From assembly GCA_009103225.1 (NCBI GenBank), contig RHPI01002503.1:749585-813584 (forward strand): a DNA stretch of 64,000 nt, read 5' to 3'. Below, piece by piece: positions 19,929 to 32,995 of the stretch. Within the stretch, counting starts at the first letter, position 1. Every line of letters begins with the position of its first letter. The DNA comes from Chlorokybus atmophyticus (taxonomy: Eukaryota; Plantae; Mesostigma and Chlorokybus algae). The position numbers and the translations under genes are program-made. The notes under the pieces were generated by a model. The model had not been told where the DNA came from and did not search any database. It saw nothing but the letters and a program-made list of their open reading frames with translations.

Positions 19929-22269
19929 ATGGCGGCGGCAGGCCATGGCGGCGGCAAGGGCGGGGCGGCGAGGCGGCGGTGGCACTTCGCCGCGACCGGC
20001 GTGCGGCTGACCCCTGGCAGCGCGCACTTCGCCGCCGCCGCGGAAGCCCTGCTCAGGGACGTCGCCAGTCACAACCATGCTCGGGAAAAGCAGGGGGTGA
20101 GTTTTGCTGCGTTGCTGGCTGCGTTGCAGAGATTTCCAAGGCAAAAGTGGTAGATACGCTCAAGTAGCCAGCCACTGTCAGCAAAGGTTGGTTTTGCCAA
20201 GGACAGGTGGTTGTTTAAATATTTGTGTCTGGTGGCTGCGCTGTACACACTGCCTGAGCCAATCCTCGAGCCAAGCATGTGCAAGCGTTGTTTGACATCC
20301 GGTTTTGTAGTGTTTGACATCCGGGTTTGTAGTATCAGCATTCGGCCAGTGTGTGCTTGGGTGTTTGTTGCTGGAGTGATCATCAGCCGTGGTGTAATGA
20401 CGTCGCATCAATTGTCTGCAATGTGTTGTAGTAGTACATATGTGCATAATCACCTGTGGGCTGACATCGCGCAGGGCCACCAGCAAGCACACCTTAAAGA
20501 TGAACACGACAGAGACAGCAGACAGGACCATGCAATGATTGGCAGTTGGGAGCTGAAACCAATTGGCGGCGCAATGACCAACAGCGTGTACGCGTGTGAG
20601 AGCATTCGCTCGCCTGATGCCACTGACGTTGGTGTTGCCAGCGTTGGGAGTGAGTGCACTCCTCCAAGCCGCCTGCTGCTGCGTGTATACGGAGAAGGCA
20701 CCGACACGCTCATCGATCGCGAGCGTGAGAGACGCATCTTCCATGTGAGCTCCACCCGATGTCAATCAGATTGTGCATTGCGGTTGCAGCAAAGATGTTG
20801 ATAATATACTGCTAAGACGTGTGCATAACAGGCGCTGTCAGAACAAGGCATTGGTCCCCGGTTGCTGGCGGAGTTTGACAACGGGCGCGTGGAAGAATGG
20901 CTTCACGGGCGAGTAGTACAAATGTGCATGACAGAGTGTTTTTCATGACTGCACATATTAACTCGTTGCATTTGGTTCATTGATATGATGAATTATTGTG
21001 CCTAACTGAGGACTGGTGCTTTGGACAGGTTTTGACGCCTGCGGAGTTCAGGGATCAGAAGATGCAGGCCAGTGTCTTATCTCAGCTGCGAAAGTTCCAC
21101 GCCTTGGTTATTGAAGGCGATAGTCCAGAGCCTGTGCTCTGGAGCGTGATGAGAAGTTGGCACAGCCAGGCGCTGGAGCTGGTAACCAATGATTCTGTCT
21201 CAGGCAAGTACAGGTTTCAGTCTCTCTTTGTGAGATCATTGTTGATCCTCTTATTAAAATTGTAGTAAAGTTGTATTTGCTCCATGTGTGACAGAGCCTC
21301 TTATTCGGATGGCTGGAGAGGAAATGGAGGACTTGGAAGCTCATTTGCGGTCAGGTTCCAATGAGGCGTGCGTTTTTTGTCATAACGACCTACAGTGCGG
21401 CAACGTGCTTGCCCTCAACAACGGGCAGCTGACACTGATAGTAAGACACACTAGTGATCCGTTGGTTGAAGCAATGCATTGCCCAACTTGTTGAACTTTG
21501 GGTACAGGACTATGAGTATGCCGGTTACAACCCAGCAGCATATGACTTGGGCAACTTGTTCTGTGAGCTGGCGGCCGACTACTCCATTGGCATGGAGCTG
21601 GTAAGCAATATACTGCCTACTGTACAGTTTCCGCAGAGTGCAGCATTTGGAAAACATAGCTGACCTCAACACGGTTCCTGGTTGTGTACTGGCATCTGCA
21701 GGACTATGACCTCTATCCAGGTGCGTTGGCCATGACTCTCTGTTGGCACGATGCATTGTAAGCCAGGACCTTGCATTATTTGTGCGTGCATCAAGCCTTC
21801 TAAAACCCAGCAGACCACAGTAAGCGCGAACGCATTGTAGCGGCCTACTTGGACAAAGACGGTGAGCAACATGTGGGCTTGATAAGGCACATGTGCAGCT
21901 GCCAGAAGTGCCATACTTGCTTAGGAGATAAGCACTGACATCTGCTAGCCAATGCAGGCGAGGTCGATGGTGCTGTGAACCAGTTGGCCGCAGCTTCACA
22001 TGCGTATGCTCTAGCTAGCCACCTGCTTTGGTCCATCTGGGCCGTCATTCAGGTGGTTGCGGTGCCGTGCATAGCACTCACAATTCATGTGGTTTGTGTG
22101 GGTGTCTCAAGTTGTACTCAACAGGCCTTGTTACTTGCTGCAGAGCAAGTTATCTGCAACTGGCTTGGATTACCTACAGTATGCTCAAACTCGATTTCGA
22201 GAGTACCAGGCCCGAAAGGTGGATGCGCTTTTGGCATTCAAGAAAGGTAGTCATTCTTTGCTGGCATAA
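19929..22269 (+). CDS. Choline/ethanolamine kinase
   Basis: LKPIGGAMTNSVY, LLLRVYGEGTDTLIDRERE, GIGPRLLAEFDNGRVEEWLHGR, Brenner motif VFCHNDLQCGNVL, IDYEYAGYNPAAYDLGNLFCE, SHLLWSIWAVIQ, LDYLQYAQTRFREY. Confidence 0.95.
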
Positions 22270-24639: not shown

Positions 24640-25473
24640 TTGCTGCACATAGGCACTTCTGCTACTGATCCTGCTAATCTTGACTGAAGCAGGTTCACTG
24701 AGCTCAGCAGTGCGTTTGGCGCAGGGCTACTGATCCCGTTTCTCATCAGTAATCCTGTTGTGCACGCAGCTGCGCCGAATGCATGATTTGCTTGCAGAGC
24801 TTAGCGACGGGAGCTTGTGCGCGGAGCTGGGCGGTGGCGGTAGAGGGCGTTGTTGATGTTGGCGCCATGGAGGTGCTGGTGGCCTGGCATGCTGCTACTG
24901 TGTCATGAAGCTGGCGTTGCGTTTCTTGGCTGAAACGAGGTGAGCCGCTTGGTGTCCAGCTGCCTTCTCGGGTGTTGTGGTTGAGTGTGACGCAGTGAGT
25001 GCCAGTGCCATCAGTTGCTGTCGCAGAAGTTGTCAGCCCTTGTGATTGCACGCACCTGTTCTAAGCATAGCCGTCCTTCCAAATATAAGTGAGAACGACT
25101 GCCATGGGTGCTGAACGCACATTAGCTTCGTCCAGCTGTGTACTGTTATCGTAACCAGCAGAAAACCGGTCCGTAGCTCAGCCGGTTGACTTGATAAAGG
25201 CTGGCTTTAAAGTAGGCTGAGAGGTTTACGGCCCAGTTGTTGCTGGCCAATTCATTGACAGCGCTGGCTTCCACAGTTGAGCTTGCTGCCACAGCTTTGC
25301 TCTTGCAGCGTGTGGACAACGTGTACTGCAAGTCTTGACGGCTCCTCTGTTAGGGTAAATTCTGGCAACAAACTGAAGCAGCCTGCTCACTCAGGGCAGT
25401 GCTTTTTTCATAAGTTTGGACCTTAAATGCTTGACTAACTCTGCAGCTGGGAAGAAACCGGCAGCTGCAACCA

Positions 25474-28400
25474 ATGGCCAACCGCTTAAAGGCATGGTCC
25501 ATGCCCAATGCTTTGCGCAACCGGACGGCATTTCCGACTGTCAAGACAGAGCCTGGCGCACATCGTGAACGCACTCATGTGGCAGCCGAGGCAGTGCACG
25601 ACAACCTTCCAAACCAACAACATGATGGAAGAGAGCCGGAAGAGCCGCTTCCCAGGCAGCCGCCTCCTGCTCACCATGAGGCAGCACGACCCAGTCGACC
25701 TAGGCAAGAGCAAAGGCAGGTTGAGGACTTCCCAAAACTCATTGGAATTGCAGGTGTGTGATGGCAACCGCTTGCTGAGGCTCTAAGAGTATAGGTTTAG
25801 TAGCTGACACGTTCATCTTGGCTTCCAGAGAAGCTCATGCAAGAACAAAGCCACGCTCGCATAGAGATTCATATGTTGGTAAGATACAGATTGGACTTAT
25901 GCACTACTTGCTGCATGCGCATGACCATCACCGCCAGCAATTACTACGTTGCTTCGCAGAGAAGAAAGCTGCAGACTGAGCAGGAAGTCAGGCAGGCCCT
26001 CGAGCTTCAGCTTGACGACGTTCATCAGCAGCACAACCTGGTCAAAGCAAAGCTTGCGGCTGATGCCAAACGCTGGGCGTCCTTGGAAACGCAGCTGGCA
26101 TCGACTGGTGCGGTGCTGGATTCGACGTCAACGACCGTCATTGCACTGCAGCAGCAACTTGAGAAAGGTAGTCTCGCAAGCGATGCGAAAGGCCCTGCAC
26201 TTGGCAAAACTCGCATGGTCAAAGAGTTTTATGTAACTCTTATGGCAATCTCGCATCAGGCGTACTTGATCAAGCATGGTCAATAACGAGCGGTTGTGCC
26301 AACAGGAGAGGAACACAAATCCGTTCTTGAAGACACACTTGAAGAACGATTGAATGAGTTTGAGGTGCTCACACATCCAACCCGTGGTTGGTCCCAAGAC
26401 CACAAGATCATGACCTGATGTGCCTATGCTGCCTTCAGGCACTTAAATTGCGAATGCAAGAACTTGCGGCCTCCAAGGATGGGGCGGATGAGAGGGTTGC
26501 TGCATGTAAGTGAGAACTTCATTCTTGCAATCTGCACCAGCATTCGCGACGCAGCACACAACCTTGTGCCCAACTCGATATCCGATATAACAGCTCATAA
26601 TGCTGCATGTTGCCGAGTTCAGTGACCAGTGAGTGCGAGACGAGACCACCTTGAAAGCTGTACTGTGATGACCGCTGAGTGATGACATGTGCTGCACAGT
26701 GCACTTGGAGAATGACAGGCTGACAAATGAGATAGTGGAGCTGCAGCAGCTGATTACGCACTTCAAAGACAGTCTTGAAAAGAGCAACGCCGCAGCAGGT
26801 CGGTTGCCCTGCATGTTTAACACGGCGTATAACATTACATGGCGCTTAACATTACATTTGATATGTGTTGAGCGCTTTCGTCCCACAACTCACAACTTTC
26901 TTTGGCAGATCGTGCGCTATCCAAGCATTGTGATGCTGAGCAGCTTGTGGCATCAAGAACACGCGATTGTGATGCAGCAAAGGCACAACTTGCTGCCTGT
27001 GAAAAGGAGCTACTGGACTCCAACGAGCGGCTGCGCGCTCTTGAACGTGAAAAGGCCGATTTGGTATGGACGTGTATTCAGTACGTCGTTGTGCCCTATG
27101 TCTTCGGCTAGCTTATTTTGCATCATCGTTGGCCAGGCCGGCAAGCTCCTAGCATTGGAAAGCGTACATCGCGTACTGCAAACAAGTATGGGTGCAGCAT
27201 CTTCCGAACTCATCAGCTTGCAAAAGAAGAACTCACAGCTCAGGTCAAAAGTTAGCGAGCTTCAAGACGCCAATGACATAGCAAACAGTGCCAATGCGGC
27301 ACTACGTGATGAAGTGTCCGCCATGACCGAGAAGTACGAAGCTGAGCGTGGGAAATTGGAGAAGAGCGAGCAGCAAGCTGAACACTTGGAAGACAATATC
27401 CATACGCTGAAGACCGACAAGGCAACACTGCAGAAGCAAATTGAAGGTATATTTGTGATTTGTTGATGCCCAGAATGCACGCGGTAAGCATCTGTGTCAC
27501 GGCACGTGGTGCAGACACCAGAGCGCTTTTCGAGCACGCGCAAACAACGGCGTCTGAAGCAGCAGCGGCAGCCTCCTTGCAGTTGAAGGCGAAGCAAGCT
27601 GAAGTGAACAAGTTGGCGGTGAAGGTTGCTGAGGTATGCCGGAGCCAGCTCCGTGTGGCTTTGCTGTTCTGCACAAAAGGCTTGCCCATACTTCTCTGGA
27701 CAGGCGGAGTTAGAGAAGGAGGCGCTGGAGGAGCATTGCAGGTCAGCTTCGGTTAGCCTCTTGGAGACTCAGGTACGAATGGGTTTACCCCGGGCAAGCA
27801 TGGTGCGCAAGGTTGCTCGTATTGCAGCGCCAACGTGCTGCTGTTTGCAGGAGAAGGTGTCAGCTGACCTGGAGGTGACAAGGCGCAAGCACGCTGGCGA
27901 AGTTGAGTCTCTTGCCGCCGAACTCAAGAAAGCCAAGGCATCACTCCACGAAGCAGGCAATCAACAGCACCGTCTGGAGGCGTCGTCGGCCCAGCTGACT
28001 GCTCAGTTACAAGAGCTTCTGAAAGCAAAGTCCATTGCAGACGAGCACGTCAAGGAACTGAGCGAGCGGCTGGAGCAAGTGCAACAACAGCACATTGAGG
28101 TTTTTGTCGCCATCCTTAGTGATTGAGCTTGCAGATACAACATGTTAGCCATCAGTGTTGCGCAGGCTACAGCTGCACGTGGGGAAGCCCTCGCTGAGCT
28201 GCAGCGTGCCCAGCAGCAGAAGGACGAAAAGGAGACAAGTTTGGTCGCAGAGTACCAGAAAAAGATCATAGCAATTGCAAAGCAGAACGAAAAGGTTTTC
28301 AGCTCAGTTTTTGTTTCATGCGTGATGTGCGGTGTTATTGCATCGTTACCAACAACACTGCTCCATGATACTCCAGGAGCTGACACAACTTCGTAAGAAG

Positions 28401-31023
28401 CTTGAAGCCAACAGTGAGAAGGAAATATTAGCCAAAGAAAAGGTTCGCAGCGTGCCTGCTTGCGTCTTGCATTGTATCCCAATGTGATAGTGTCGCCGTC
28501 AGTACCAAGTCCGCCTGCTTCATCTCAATTTCATAATGTGTCGCAAGTGTCAACTTGGCAGAAGCACACTTCTTGCGGACTCCTGAAAGTTGCACACGCA
28601 TGAGCTTGTTTTGAGGCATTGCAAGCAGGCAGAGAAAGCTCTTAGTGAAGCTCGCGATGCTTTGGGTACGGAGCGCACAAGAGCAGCTAAGCTACAAGAT
28701 GAGCTTCACACCTTGCACAGTCGTCACGACAACCAGGTCCATGGCTCTCGTGTTTGGTTTGGCACCATGCACTGCAATGCTGCATGTGCCAGTAAGGCAG
28801 CGGCAGTTCTTGCAGGTCAATGTATTGAAGAAACAAGTGGAAGAGCTCTCATTGCATGTCAAAGACCTGCAGTCCGAAAAGAGGAGGCTTGTGAAGGACT
28901 TGCAAGACAGGCTGAAGCAGGTGAACTGCTGTGAAACAATTGTTTCCTGCACAGCTATTTGGCCCCTTGGAGTTGACCATGTCATGTAGGCACGGAAGGA
29001 GTGGCAGGCTGAGCATGCAGCGGCAATGTCGGAATTGACAAAGCTGCACAACCAGAGCATTGCCGACAGGAAGGCAGCTGGCAACAACACCATGCAATCA
29101 CAGGTCGCTATGTCACGTGCGGATCGGGATTCTCCCCAAGCACGCCATGTTCTGCTAAGTGCCCGCATCCAAGCTTCGTGCAACAGGTAGCACACCTGGA
29201 GGAGGAGATCAGCGTTCTCCGCGCAGCGAATCAGATGGACAAGGAAGAATACAAAGTTCAATTAAGGGAGCTCGCTGAAATGCACACTGCTAGGACTGCA
29301 GCTCAGGTTGGTCAACTGATTGCCCCTTACAGATGGCATTTGCAAACTGCGCATAACGACAAACTCAGCATAAGCCATCCCTGCAGCAAGCACGAGCCGA
29401 AGAACTTCAGCAGCAGTTGGCTGCGGCAAAGCAAGAACATGCTGCGCAGGTCCGTCAGAGCAACCTGATTTGCTGAAAGCCCCCCCCTCACGGAGTGCTG
29501 TGGCATAGAAAGCATCCAGCTCCTGAAATTGCCTTGTCTCGCAGGTATCAAGGGCAGAAGAACTGCAACAAAAGCTGGCTGCGGCACAGCAAGATCACGA
29601 GCGCATTCTCAACGATGTAGTGTCCAAACACATAACTGCACCGCCTGAGTTGCACGCACGCCAAACAGCCTCGCAGGTGACGCCGTAGACTTAGAGCAAC
29701 TCACCAAGTTCCAAGCCTCAACAGGTTTTCACATACTTTGTCAAGAGCCCTGCACAATACCCGGAAGTCAGCGCATCTGAAGCGCCGTGCTGACTCTGCA
29801 TTGATTTGTCTTTTACACATTGCGCATGTTCGTGCAGGCAATCATGGCCGCTGAACATGTCGACATCATGCACAGTCAAGCGGGCACTGAACAGCGCGCA
29901 GAAATTGATGTCCTGCAAATTGCTGCAATGTATTCTCAGCAGGCGGAACCAGAAGTCCCATCACCGGCAAGCAAGGTAAGCAGCTCGTGGTCCCTGTATC
30001 TGGCTTGTGGTCAGATGTAAAAATTACTTGGTATCAACAAAAGGCTACGCATTACCTTACGAAGTGCGTGTGAACTGGCAGAAACGGAATAGGGAAAAAG
30101 TTTCTGTACCTGCAGAAGTATCTGATATCAGTGATGAAGAAGGGGCACAGAAGTTGACATCCACACCGCCACCTGTCCAAGCTACGCGAAGGAATCCGGT
30201 ATGCAGCTAACGACATCTTCTGCACTGCATTGCTATCAGTGAGTGACCGCCATTTCATTGCTGGCAGCGCCGTAAGCCAACAAGTGCGCGGAACACAACA
30301 GCGGTGCCAGCAAAGCGTCGCTTGCTGGAGGTACTGCTCATGAGAAATGTTGCTCAGCGTCACTGATGCAACCGCAAACAAGACTGGCATTTGAGCACGA
30401 ATGCTCCTTGCTTTATTTGAGTACAAATGCACGTGCCTCGCCCCATGCAGCACTTGACTCGCTATGCGATGCAGGATGATTCGCAAAGGGCAGAGAAGGA
30501 GGTCAGCGTCCTGGGTAGGATGGCACCTGCGGTGAAACAATTTAGAGGGCGCCCTCGCACGGAGTCGGTGCGCGTGTGCTAGTAGCATCAATGTTATTGT
30601 GTCTAGATTCGATGTTTGCCTTCCACCACTAACCACTGTGTGCAGCGTGAGGTTACCAGCAGCGAGTACCAAGTTGCAGCATCTGATGGCACCAAGACAC
30701 TGACAAAGAAGAAGACGAGCAGAAAGACCATTACTTACAACATCAAGGTACTCCGATATGTGCTTCAACAGGCAGACAGCTACGCGGTGATCCAACATGA
30801 AGGTGCCTGACACAAACCTCTGTTGTCCTACAGGCTTCCCCGGTTGCCAAGCACTCTCCCAAAGGCCAGGTATGCCCCATATTCATCCAAGTGATAACTT
30901 TGGCACATAAACTGACCAGTACATCAACCTCAGGCCGGTAAGACACGTCGATCATCACCTACGCGCGAGCTCTTTGGCAGCGGCTCGTTGGACCCATATG
31001 CATACTCGCAGGACCAAGCGTAG
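25474..31023 (+). CDS. ZYP1: Long coiled-coil protein, probable synaptonemal complex transverse filament protein (ZYP1/ZEP1-like)
   Basis: About 20 exons of heptad-rich sequence. The spliced N-terminus DFPKLIGIA|EKLMQEQSHARIEIHML|RRKLQTEQEVRQALELQL...ADAKRWASLETQLASTGAVLDSTSTTVIALQQQL aligns without gaps to recalled Arabidopsis ZYP1. The C-tail has EVTSSEYQVAASDG..KKKTSRKT and ends RELFGSGSLDPYAYSQDQA* (compare ZYP1 [20 protein letters not shown]). The start codon is approximate. Confidence 0.75.
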
Positions 31024-32995
31024 TGAGCCGCACTTACATACTGTGAGTTTCAGTTTTACGCACAGTCTGTTCACGTTAACAGGCCGCTTCCTTAAATGTC
31101 TCTAGTCTGTAGGTAGCTCTTTTTAGGGTGTGCACTGTCAGGTTATTGTGGCAAACAGTCGCTGCTCCGCCTTCTAGTAAGGGTGTCTGGACGCAACTGC
31201 AGCAGTAGTAGCAAGCTATTGTGTAGCTTTTCTGAGCCGCTTCACTTCACATTTGTACCATAGTGATGTTCACTTGGTACACATTACCGCAGAGCAACGT
31301 CTATGCCATCTTCAGCAGTATCAGATAGCACACGCATGACCTGCGTGTTAGTAACACAACATGCCGGTTGTCACATGCTCTCAGATCGCGTATTGCGAGT
31401 TACCACACCCAGACGTAAACACATAAGCCAGTGCCGTCTGATTGGTTACCAGTACCATCAATTAAACAATCGGTGCAAATTACCCGCTGCTGTTTAACAG
31501 CTCGCAAAGGTTTCTCCTCATCATTGACTACACTTTAGTACAAGCAAGCCCACGCTTGCACAGCGCATAGCGCACAGCATAGCCTAATGACTTAGGAGCC
31601 CCGGGGCGAGTATTGGATGCTCCACCATACATGCTGGCACCAGCACTCTGTCACTGCATGTGCACGCACGCGCATTACTGCTAATGCTACCAGGCTTTAT
31701 GAATACTCTACGTTAGCTAACCCAAGCATTTGCAGCGTCCAACAACGAGAGTTGCCGTAGTATCTGTGCATGCGGCGTACAATGTTGATGACGAGGTTCC
31801 AGCAGTCCACACACGTACATGCAGCTCAACAGGACTCCTTCCTCCCTCTCCGCCACCACCATGTTGTTGCTGTGCACACAGCGACTGCCTGGCTAGTGTG
31901 TCATGCTGACGTATGCATGTTTCATGCTTATGACCCCTTGCATGCGGTCTTATCAGCACTCCATCTTTTGTACACCGTGTCCAACCCTGCTCGACCCGAG
32001 CAGCCTGACAGCTCTGGTCAGCGTCGCTCAGTGCGCCAGGGCCATGAGCGCTGTCACGCATTGGCTGCCGTTACGTTGCTGCATGCTGCATCGCTGGCAA
32101 TGATACCGTCATTGGCATGGGCAGACTACTACTCCCCATGCATTCGCTGCTTATTGCCCATCAGCACCACCATCACATTCGACAACTGGCGTGTGGCTAT
32201 GCAATTGGAACTGCTAGCGTCACATTGTAGCGAGCAGTATCACCAATAAGCGCGCAACTGAATAGCCGTGCTGCTGCATTGCATGCAACAGTTCGCACAC
32301 ATGTCGGAAGTGCACTCTGTAAGGCATAGTTGACTGCAGCGTACAGTTGAAACACTACCAAGTTATCACAACTGTCAACAAGATGCGCGAAACGGTTCTT
32401 AGCTGATGAGCTGGCTAAGGTGATACTGACCATAACTAAGTGTTATTAACATATGATTACCGTTGCATGTACTATCATACAATATATACTAAGCGAATGT
32501 CCAAGACATACATCATACAACCAAAAGTCACATGTTTTGCGTCCATGAATACGACACAGCACAATCAGCTACTCATATAATTGAAACGATGATACAAGAT
32601 ACCTGTTCAGCATGAGCGACAATATGCCAAGTGGTTAGCGACTACTATTACTTTCAACACATAGGAGCACAAGGTTGCACATGCACATGTGCAAGTCACA
32701 ATTTCTTTGGTATGCAAGCGTAGCATACAGACAGCTTACGCAGCATGTGCTGGACATAAACAGGTGATATCACATGTGCAGATCAGAACACATGTGCAAT
32801 GACCTTTTTGTGTCCAGGTTGGTGAGAGCCACTGTCTCAGCATAACGACCAAAACTGAAATGTATACCATTTACAATCAAGCAATGTTCACCCTGTACAT
32901 GGCTAACTTGTAATTGACATTGAGCAACACCTGCACCGTCACTGTACATATTGTCTGTTGCATTGAATGTACAGCTAGTCCTCCCTCAATCACCT

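Follow-up and report, generated by a model that had tools for sequence, protein, structure and literature searches.

Can an alga in which no one has observed sex carry a working gene for the transverse filament of the synaptonemal complex, and if so, what might such a gene be doing there? The question is raised by one locus in a stretch of 64,000 nucleotides from the early-diverging streptophyte Chlorokybus atmophyticus (GenBank assembly GCA_009103225.1, contig RHPI01002503.1, positions 749,585 to 813,584 of the forward strand), which we call the window and whose positions we use throughout. At 25474 to 31023, a reading made from the letters alone (hereafter, the sequence-only reading) had proposed a homologue of plant ZYP1. 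Here, we have followed that proposal through gene structure, transcription, architecture, motif-level homology, and selective constraint, each of which could be observed directly, and our answer is that the gene is very probably an intact and transcribed Chlorokybus orthologue of ZYP1/ZEP1, the plant transverse filament. Because its reading frame is intact, its transcripts are spliced, and purifying selection acts on it, we think it probably serves in a meiosis that has escaped observation. The ZYP1 reading is supported by collinear matches in the N-terminal, middle, and C-terminal parts, by a tripartite architecture, by the lack of any better family among those searched, and by a profile search already in print, in which the same gene is listed (PMC9957857).

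What, then, does the gene look like? We built an exon model from the three + frame translations of 25000-31600 and then checked its joints against transcriptome contigs. The model runs on the + strand from an ATG at 25474 to a TAG at 31021-31023, with 26 exons, a coding sequence of 3141 nt, and a product of 1046 aa; every intron is GT..AG and measures 64-194 nt, and intron 1 is a phase 1 intron placed after the A of IA, with EKL following. The sequence-only reading had the start and the end exactly right and the number of exons wrong (roughly 20), and the five spliced peptides that it quoted are all in the model, at residues 86-129, 144-176, 591-620, 973-997, and 1028-1041. An end for exon 23 at 30501 (30475-30501) was ruled out by the contigs, which place the true end at 30567. 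The features are as follows.

25474..31023, +: the gene as a whole, very probably a ZYP1 orthologue (public identifier Chrsp44S05886), from the exon model, spliced contigs, and a public protein that is the same apart from a retained intron 2
25474-25753, +: exon 1, disordered head rich in prolines (aa 1-85), then the first part of the conserved N block (FPKLIGIA)
25829..26167, +: span of exons 2-3, N-terminal block at the rod start (AEKL ... W.SLE ... ST ...), from ungapped BLASTP and fragment tests
25829-25878, +: exon 2, conserved N block
25879-25959, +: intron 2, 81 nt, in frame and with no stop, GTAAGA donor and CAG acceptor
25960-26167, +: exon 3, conserved N block
26306..29676, +: span of exons 4-19, proline-free acidic coiled-coil rod, from the proline map and AlphaFold2, with joints in contigs from exon 8 on
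26306-26364, +: exon 4
26439-26505, +: exon 5
26700-26798, +: exon 6
26909-27063, +: exon 7
27137-27446, +: exon 8
27515-27633, +: exon 9
27704-27772, +: exon 10
27851-28099, +: exon 11
28166-28294, +: exon 12
28377-28442, +: exon 13
28629-28736, +: exon 14
28816-28920, +: exon 15
28990-29103, +: exon 16
29187-29306, +: exon 17
29387-29449, +: exon 18
29545-29676, +: exon 19
29838..30869, +: span of exons 20-25, in which the helical part ends and the basic serine/threonine-proline (S/T-P) tail lies, from C-block BLASTP and contig joints
29838-29975, +: exon 20
30082-30198, +: exon 21
30268-30330, +: exon 22
30475-30567, +: exon 23, end set by contigs
30646-30747, +: exon 24, VTSSEYQV...TKKKTSR block
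30834-30869, +: exon 25
30934-31023, +: exon 26, terminal LFGSGSLDPYAY motif and stop codon, with the joint 30869/30934 in three runs

Is the likeness to ZYP1 anything more than the likeness of one coiled coil to another? We took the Arabidopsis ZYP1A sequence from PMC9957857 and made the comparisons with short fragments of it. The Arabidopsis fragments given in the sequence-only reading agree with this source, save for one that was off by two residues and truly reads GRVTKRRKTR. Aligned by Smith-Waterman against the whole model, five ZYP1A fragments found their best matches in collinear order, at residues 86-128, 145-176, 592-620, 973-997, and 1029-1040, with shuffle p values in that order of 0.0035, <0.0005, 0.037, 0.003, and <0.0005; the first two of them, both N-terminal, are spaced by 14 residues in ZYP1A and in the Chlorokybus protein alike. 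Judged by these fragments, the similarity is greater than chance would give. In the N block, exon 3 aligns ungapped by BLASTP with a 74-aa Arabidopsis fragment (28 bits, E 9e-7, 18/66 identical or 27%), the Trp included, and in the C block, the last 114 residues align with the last 83 of ZYP1A (32 bits, E 1e-7, 26/78 identical or 33%) in an alignment that takes in both motifs, VT..EY.V...TK+KT and the terminal LF..GSL.PYA. That the N block would match without gaps, that its rare W would be conserved, and that the peptides would follow the Arabidopsis order had all been claimed in advance, and the BLASTP and fragment tests uphold each of them.

The architecture points the same way. Thirteen prolines fall in residues 1-87 and none in 88-822, a rod that is acidic (isoelectric point, pI, 5.9), whereas the tail, residues 880-1046, has a pI of 10.55 and carries several basic clusters along with five S/T-P sites. 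AlphaFold2, run on the public protein as a single sequence and with low confidence (predicted local distance difference test, pLDDT, 54), gives coil over residues 1-85, a near-continuous helix over 86-845 (public numbering), and coil again from 891, and the predicted start of the helix coincides with the first conserved residue, F86. The proline map, the pI values, and AlphaFold2 together confirm the tripartite layout of a transverse filament—an unstructured head, a long coiled coil, and a basic S/T-P tail—that had been described from the letters as a non-coiled N-head, a coiled coil, and a basic C-tail. Within the rod, exon 18 (29387-29449) and the 5' part of exon 19 (29545-29610) are a tandem duplication of a unit of ~60 nt; each copy encodes RAEELQQ.LAAA.Q.H, the two are ~64% identical in DNA over 86 nt with flanks included (and more so in the coding part), and the rod is lengthened by ~21 residues.

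Is the gene used? Transcriptome contigs were aligned to 25400-31100 (5701 letters) from runs that we call X1 (a 2021 study), X4 (a 2013 study), and X6. The X1 and X4 contigs are 99-100% identical to the window and have no introns. Between the exon 8/9 joint and the exon 25/26 joint, these two included, the model has 18 joints; contigs show at least 15 of them directly, and the offsets between the pieces of a 2296-nt contig fit the other three. This single contig spans 27258 to beyond 31100, and therefore, the last exon with its LFGSGSLDPYAY motif is part of the mRNA; with the joint 30869/30934 present in three runs, the worry that the terminal LFxxGSLxPYA exon might lie outside the transcript falls away. 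Contig cover of exons 3-7 is of low depth, and none of their joints is among those listed. Run X6 holds a spliced copy that is 90-95% identical to the window (27870-31042) and has identical joints. In that copy, 26 different letters take the place of 29951-29975, where exon 20 ends, and beyond 31042 the 3' untranslated region no longer follows the window.

One exon joint deserves a paragraph of its own. The public protein jgi/Chlat1/6317/Chrsp44S05886 (eukprot) belongs to the genome that Wang et al. 2020 published for Chlorokybus strain CCAC 0220, later renamed C. melkonianii (PMC8611356). It has 1073 aa, that is, the 1046 aa of our model plus 27 residues from intron 2, and across exons 2 and 3 it is 100% identical to the translation that reads straight through intron 2. 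RNA cover of exons 1-2 and intron 2 is nil, for splicing or against it. We nevertheless take the public model to retain the intron because a donor and an acceptor are present, because the translation of the intron is rich in Cys, Thr, and Tyr, and because the Arabidopsis ZYP1A alignment of the N block—the most conserved N-terminal block, into which the extra residues are inserted—is ungapped only when intron 2 is spliced out. On this sequence evidence, the retained intron is probably an annotation error.

The X6 run is labelled as the same organism, and its transcript probably stems from a cryptic sister species, one of those treated in the 2021 study of cryptic species in Chlorokybus. Comparing the window with that transcript would then be a comparison between species. 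We could class 40 of the 69 differences, 22 as synonymous and 18 as non-synonymous, over 392 synonymous and 1312 non-synonymous sites, which gives a rough omega of ~0.24 (binomial p 1e-5 versus neutrality) and indicates purifying selection on the gene between sister species. The differences divide as follows.

Rod: 13 synonymous, 17 non-synonymous, omega ~0.37
Tail, residues 835-1046: 9 synonymous, 1 non-synonymous, omega ~0.04

Several observations weigh against what we have argued, and they should be set out together. The head bears no similarity to the first 40 aa of Arabidopsis ZYP1A (p 0.42), and exons 1-2 are without any RNA support. The pairwise E-values refer to small, pre-chosen search spaces, and the fragments had been picked by eye. 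A phmmer search of 1.84 billion representatives with the N-block read-through recovered no named ZYP1, only the protein of the gene itself and a TPR protein (E 7e-4), a match that we rejected as spurious. Word-indexed searches with the C-terminal region, with the full length, or with a two-row alignment that joined Chlorokybus to the 74-aa Arabidopsis N-block fragment returned, among at most 8000 candidates per search, the same Chlorokybus protein or nothing; in these searches, coiled-coil word matches dominated the candidates. The omega values draw on the 40 of 69 differences that were classed, are uncorrected for multiple hits, and do not count the letters replaced where exon 20 ends. Finally, no synaptonemal complex and no meiosis have ever been seen in Chlorokybus (PMC7027972, PMC8611356).

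Might the gene be a true ZYP1 homologue in an alga that is truly asexual, kept for some non-meiotic job (somatic DNA repair or nuclear architecture, for example) or slowly decaying? Sex has indeed never been observed (PMC7027972, PMC8611356), the transcripts come from runs labelled as the same organism that resemble ordinary culture transcriptomes, and the rod, with its omega of ~0.37, evolves fairly fast. That reading sits badly, however, with an open reading frame intact across 26 exons, with an omega of ~0.04 in the tail between species that are maybe tens of millions of years apart, and with a nearly full meiotic toolkit kept in the genome (PMC9957857, PMC7027972), and we consider asexuality an improbable explanation.

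That the gene encodes some unrelated long coiled-coil protein (a golgin, a lamin-like NMCP/CRWN, a centrosomal, or a kinetochore protein), with its likeness to ZYP1 arising from composition and chance, we hold to be very improbable, for although the database-scale searches gave no significant ZYP1 match among the matches listed, the language-model neighbours are generic, and Pfam offers weak sub-threshold matches to Filament, ATG16, Nuf2, and ZapB, it is the tail, which is not coiled, and the start of the rod that hold the best matches to ZYP1, collinear, with the same spacing in both proteins, and with the Trp conserved, none of the Pfam families attains its cutoff, and the same gene was chosen in an independent profile search now in print (PMC9957857). 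The searches for other families can be given briefly. A Pfam scan of ten exon translations and of the whole public protein found no family at cutoff, the sub-threshold matches all being to generic coiled coils. A PDB sequence search yielded one chance match, Spc24, at E 0.24. In the ESM Atlas, the neighbours are generic coiled-coil clusters that do not discriminate, and the SYCP1 cluster stands at rank 33. Another coiled-coil family with a better claim, which would have counted against the sequence-only reading, was thus found in neither Pfam nor PDB.

How new is any of this? Less new than the sequence-only reading supposed. It had presented an intact copy as pushing the central region of the plant synaptonemal complex deeper in time, and this has already been printed: Thangavel et al. 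2023 (PMC9957857), using PSI-BLAST and profile HMMs, place Chrsp44S05886 in the ZYP1 column of their Supplementary file 2, in the row Chlorokybus sp. (Wang et al. 2020). The same column holds candidates from the chlorophytes Chlamydomonas (XP_001694664.2) and Volvox (XP_002948362.1) and from Klebsormidium (kfl00151_0310), Chara (GBG87227.1), Spirogloea, and Mesotaenium; ZYP1 was not detected in Mesostigma, the sister lineage, and is, according to that survey, present in all major lineages of Viridiplantae. The Chlorokybus row also lists ASY1, DMC1, HEI10, HOP2, MER3, MLH1, MLH3, MND1, MSH4, MSH5, PCH2, REC8, SPO11-2, and ZIP4, with ASY3, ASY4, SHOC1, PTD, SPO11-1, PRD1-3, and MTOPVIB not detected. 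The hint of cryptic meiosis is likewise not a novelty, Wang et al. 2020 (PMC7027972) having described C. atmophyticus as a species without known sex, looked for cryptic sex in it, recovered the core meiosis-specific genes, and inferred cryptic sex from them; Irisarri et al. 2021 (PMC8611356) report that no sexual reproduction has been observed in Chlorokybus. In other words, both the orthology call and the proposal of cryptic sex are already known. Were it not for those papers, finding ZYP1 intact in the streptophyte lineage farthest from land plants would have placed the plant transverse filament at the base of Streptophyta and would also have pointed to hidden sex in Chlorokybus. What we add is a corrected gene model, the splice evidence, the pattern of constraint, and the duplication in exons 18 and 19. 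The corrected model is useful in itself, as are a map of the residues that survive across streptophytes and the constraint between sister species, and that constraint makes ZYP1 a good marker for anyone seeking meiotic stages in Chlorokybus.

If the gene is indeed a ZYP1 orthologue, how might its protein work? By the general geometry of coiled coils, ~735 helical residues make about 105-110 nm of coiled coil. By analogy with Arabidopsis ZYP1 and mammalian SYCP1, the rod would form a parallel coiled-coil dimer of that length, spanning half of the complex. At the midline, the block conserved from F86 onward, where the rod begins, would then meet its counterpart from the opposite homologue, along with central-element proteins, and the rod end, the basic S/T-P tail, and the terminal LFxxGSLxPYA motif would be located at the chromosome axis. 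On the same analogy, the protein may be expected to act in synapsis and in the control of crossovers. In Arabidopsis, residues 661-725 of ZYP1B recruit PCH2 at the axis, and the terminal 22 residues, with LF..GSL.PYA, activate by themselves in two-hybrid assays, which made it impossible to assess them there. One might go further, and we do so as speculation that is unlikely to prove right: transcriptome assemblies from two studies, covering at least two Chlorokybus lineages, contain ZYP1 mRNA, and the tail is strongly constrained, so meiosis might be regular but unnoticed in ordinary cultures, or the transverse filament might have a second, non-meiotic function, with LFxxGSLxPYA in either case as a putative axis-docking or regulatory element.

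The comparison with the known plant proteins, Arabidopsis ZYP1A and ZYP1B (AT1G22260/AT1G22275) and rice ZEP1, can be stated as what was kept and what was not. The tripartite layout is common to all of them. Chlorokybus further shares the rod-start block AEKL...W..LE..ST (the ungapped 66 aa at 27% identity), the collinear middle match, the C-terminal VT..EY.V...G..TK+KT block, the terminal LF..GSL.PYA, and the basic S/T-P tail. It differs in length, with 1046 aa against 871/856 aa in Arabidopsis; in its head of ~85 aa, which has many prolines and no sequence kinship with that of Arabidopsis; in its rod, which is longer by ~60-70 residues, partly from the exon 18/19 duplication; and in the end of its tail, ...PYAYSQDQA, which goes without the second DPYAF repeat of Arabidopsis. 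Farther afield, mammalian SYCP1, yeast Zip1, and Drosophila C(3)G have the same architecture of a long coiled coil with a basic C-tail and work as parallel dimers with their N-termini at the midline and the basic C-tail at the axis, and by analogy the Chlorokybus protein is probably alike in its working. Membership of the SYCP1 family could not be detected in sequence: PF05483 (SCP-1) gave no match at E up to 0.1 with the whole protein or up to 1 with its pieces, and the PDB search returned no SYCP1 chain.

Two observations concern the surroundings of the gene. Upstream of it, an open reading frame fragment at 20211-20801 (+) resembles the start of the choline/ethanolamine kinase family (27.5 bits, E 2.4e-06, with a Pfam cutoff of 29) and probably belongs to a neighbouring gene on the same strand. 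By its gene identifier, the MLH3 candidate in the table of PMC9957857, Chrsp44S05861, would sit outside the window or at its edge on the scaffold of ZYP1 (Chrsp44S05886), which it precedes by 25 gene numbers.

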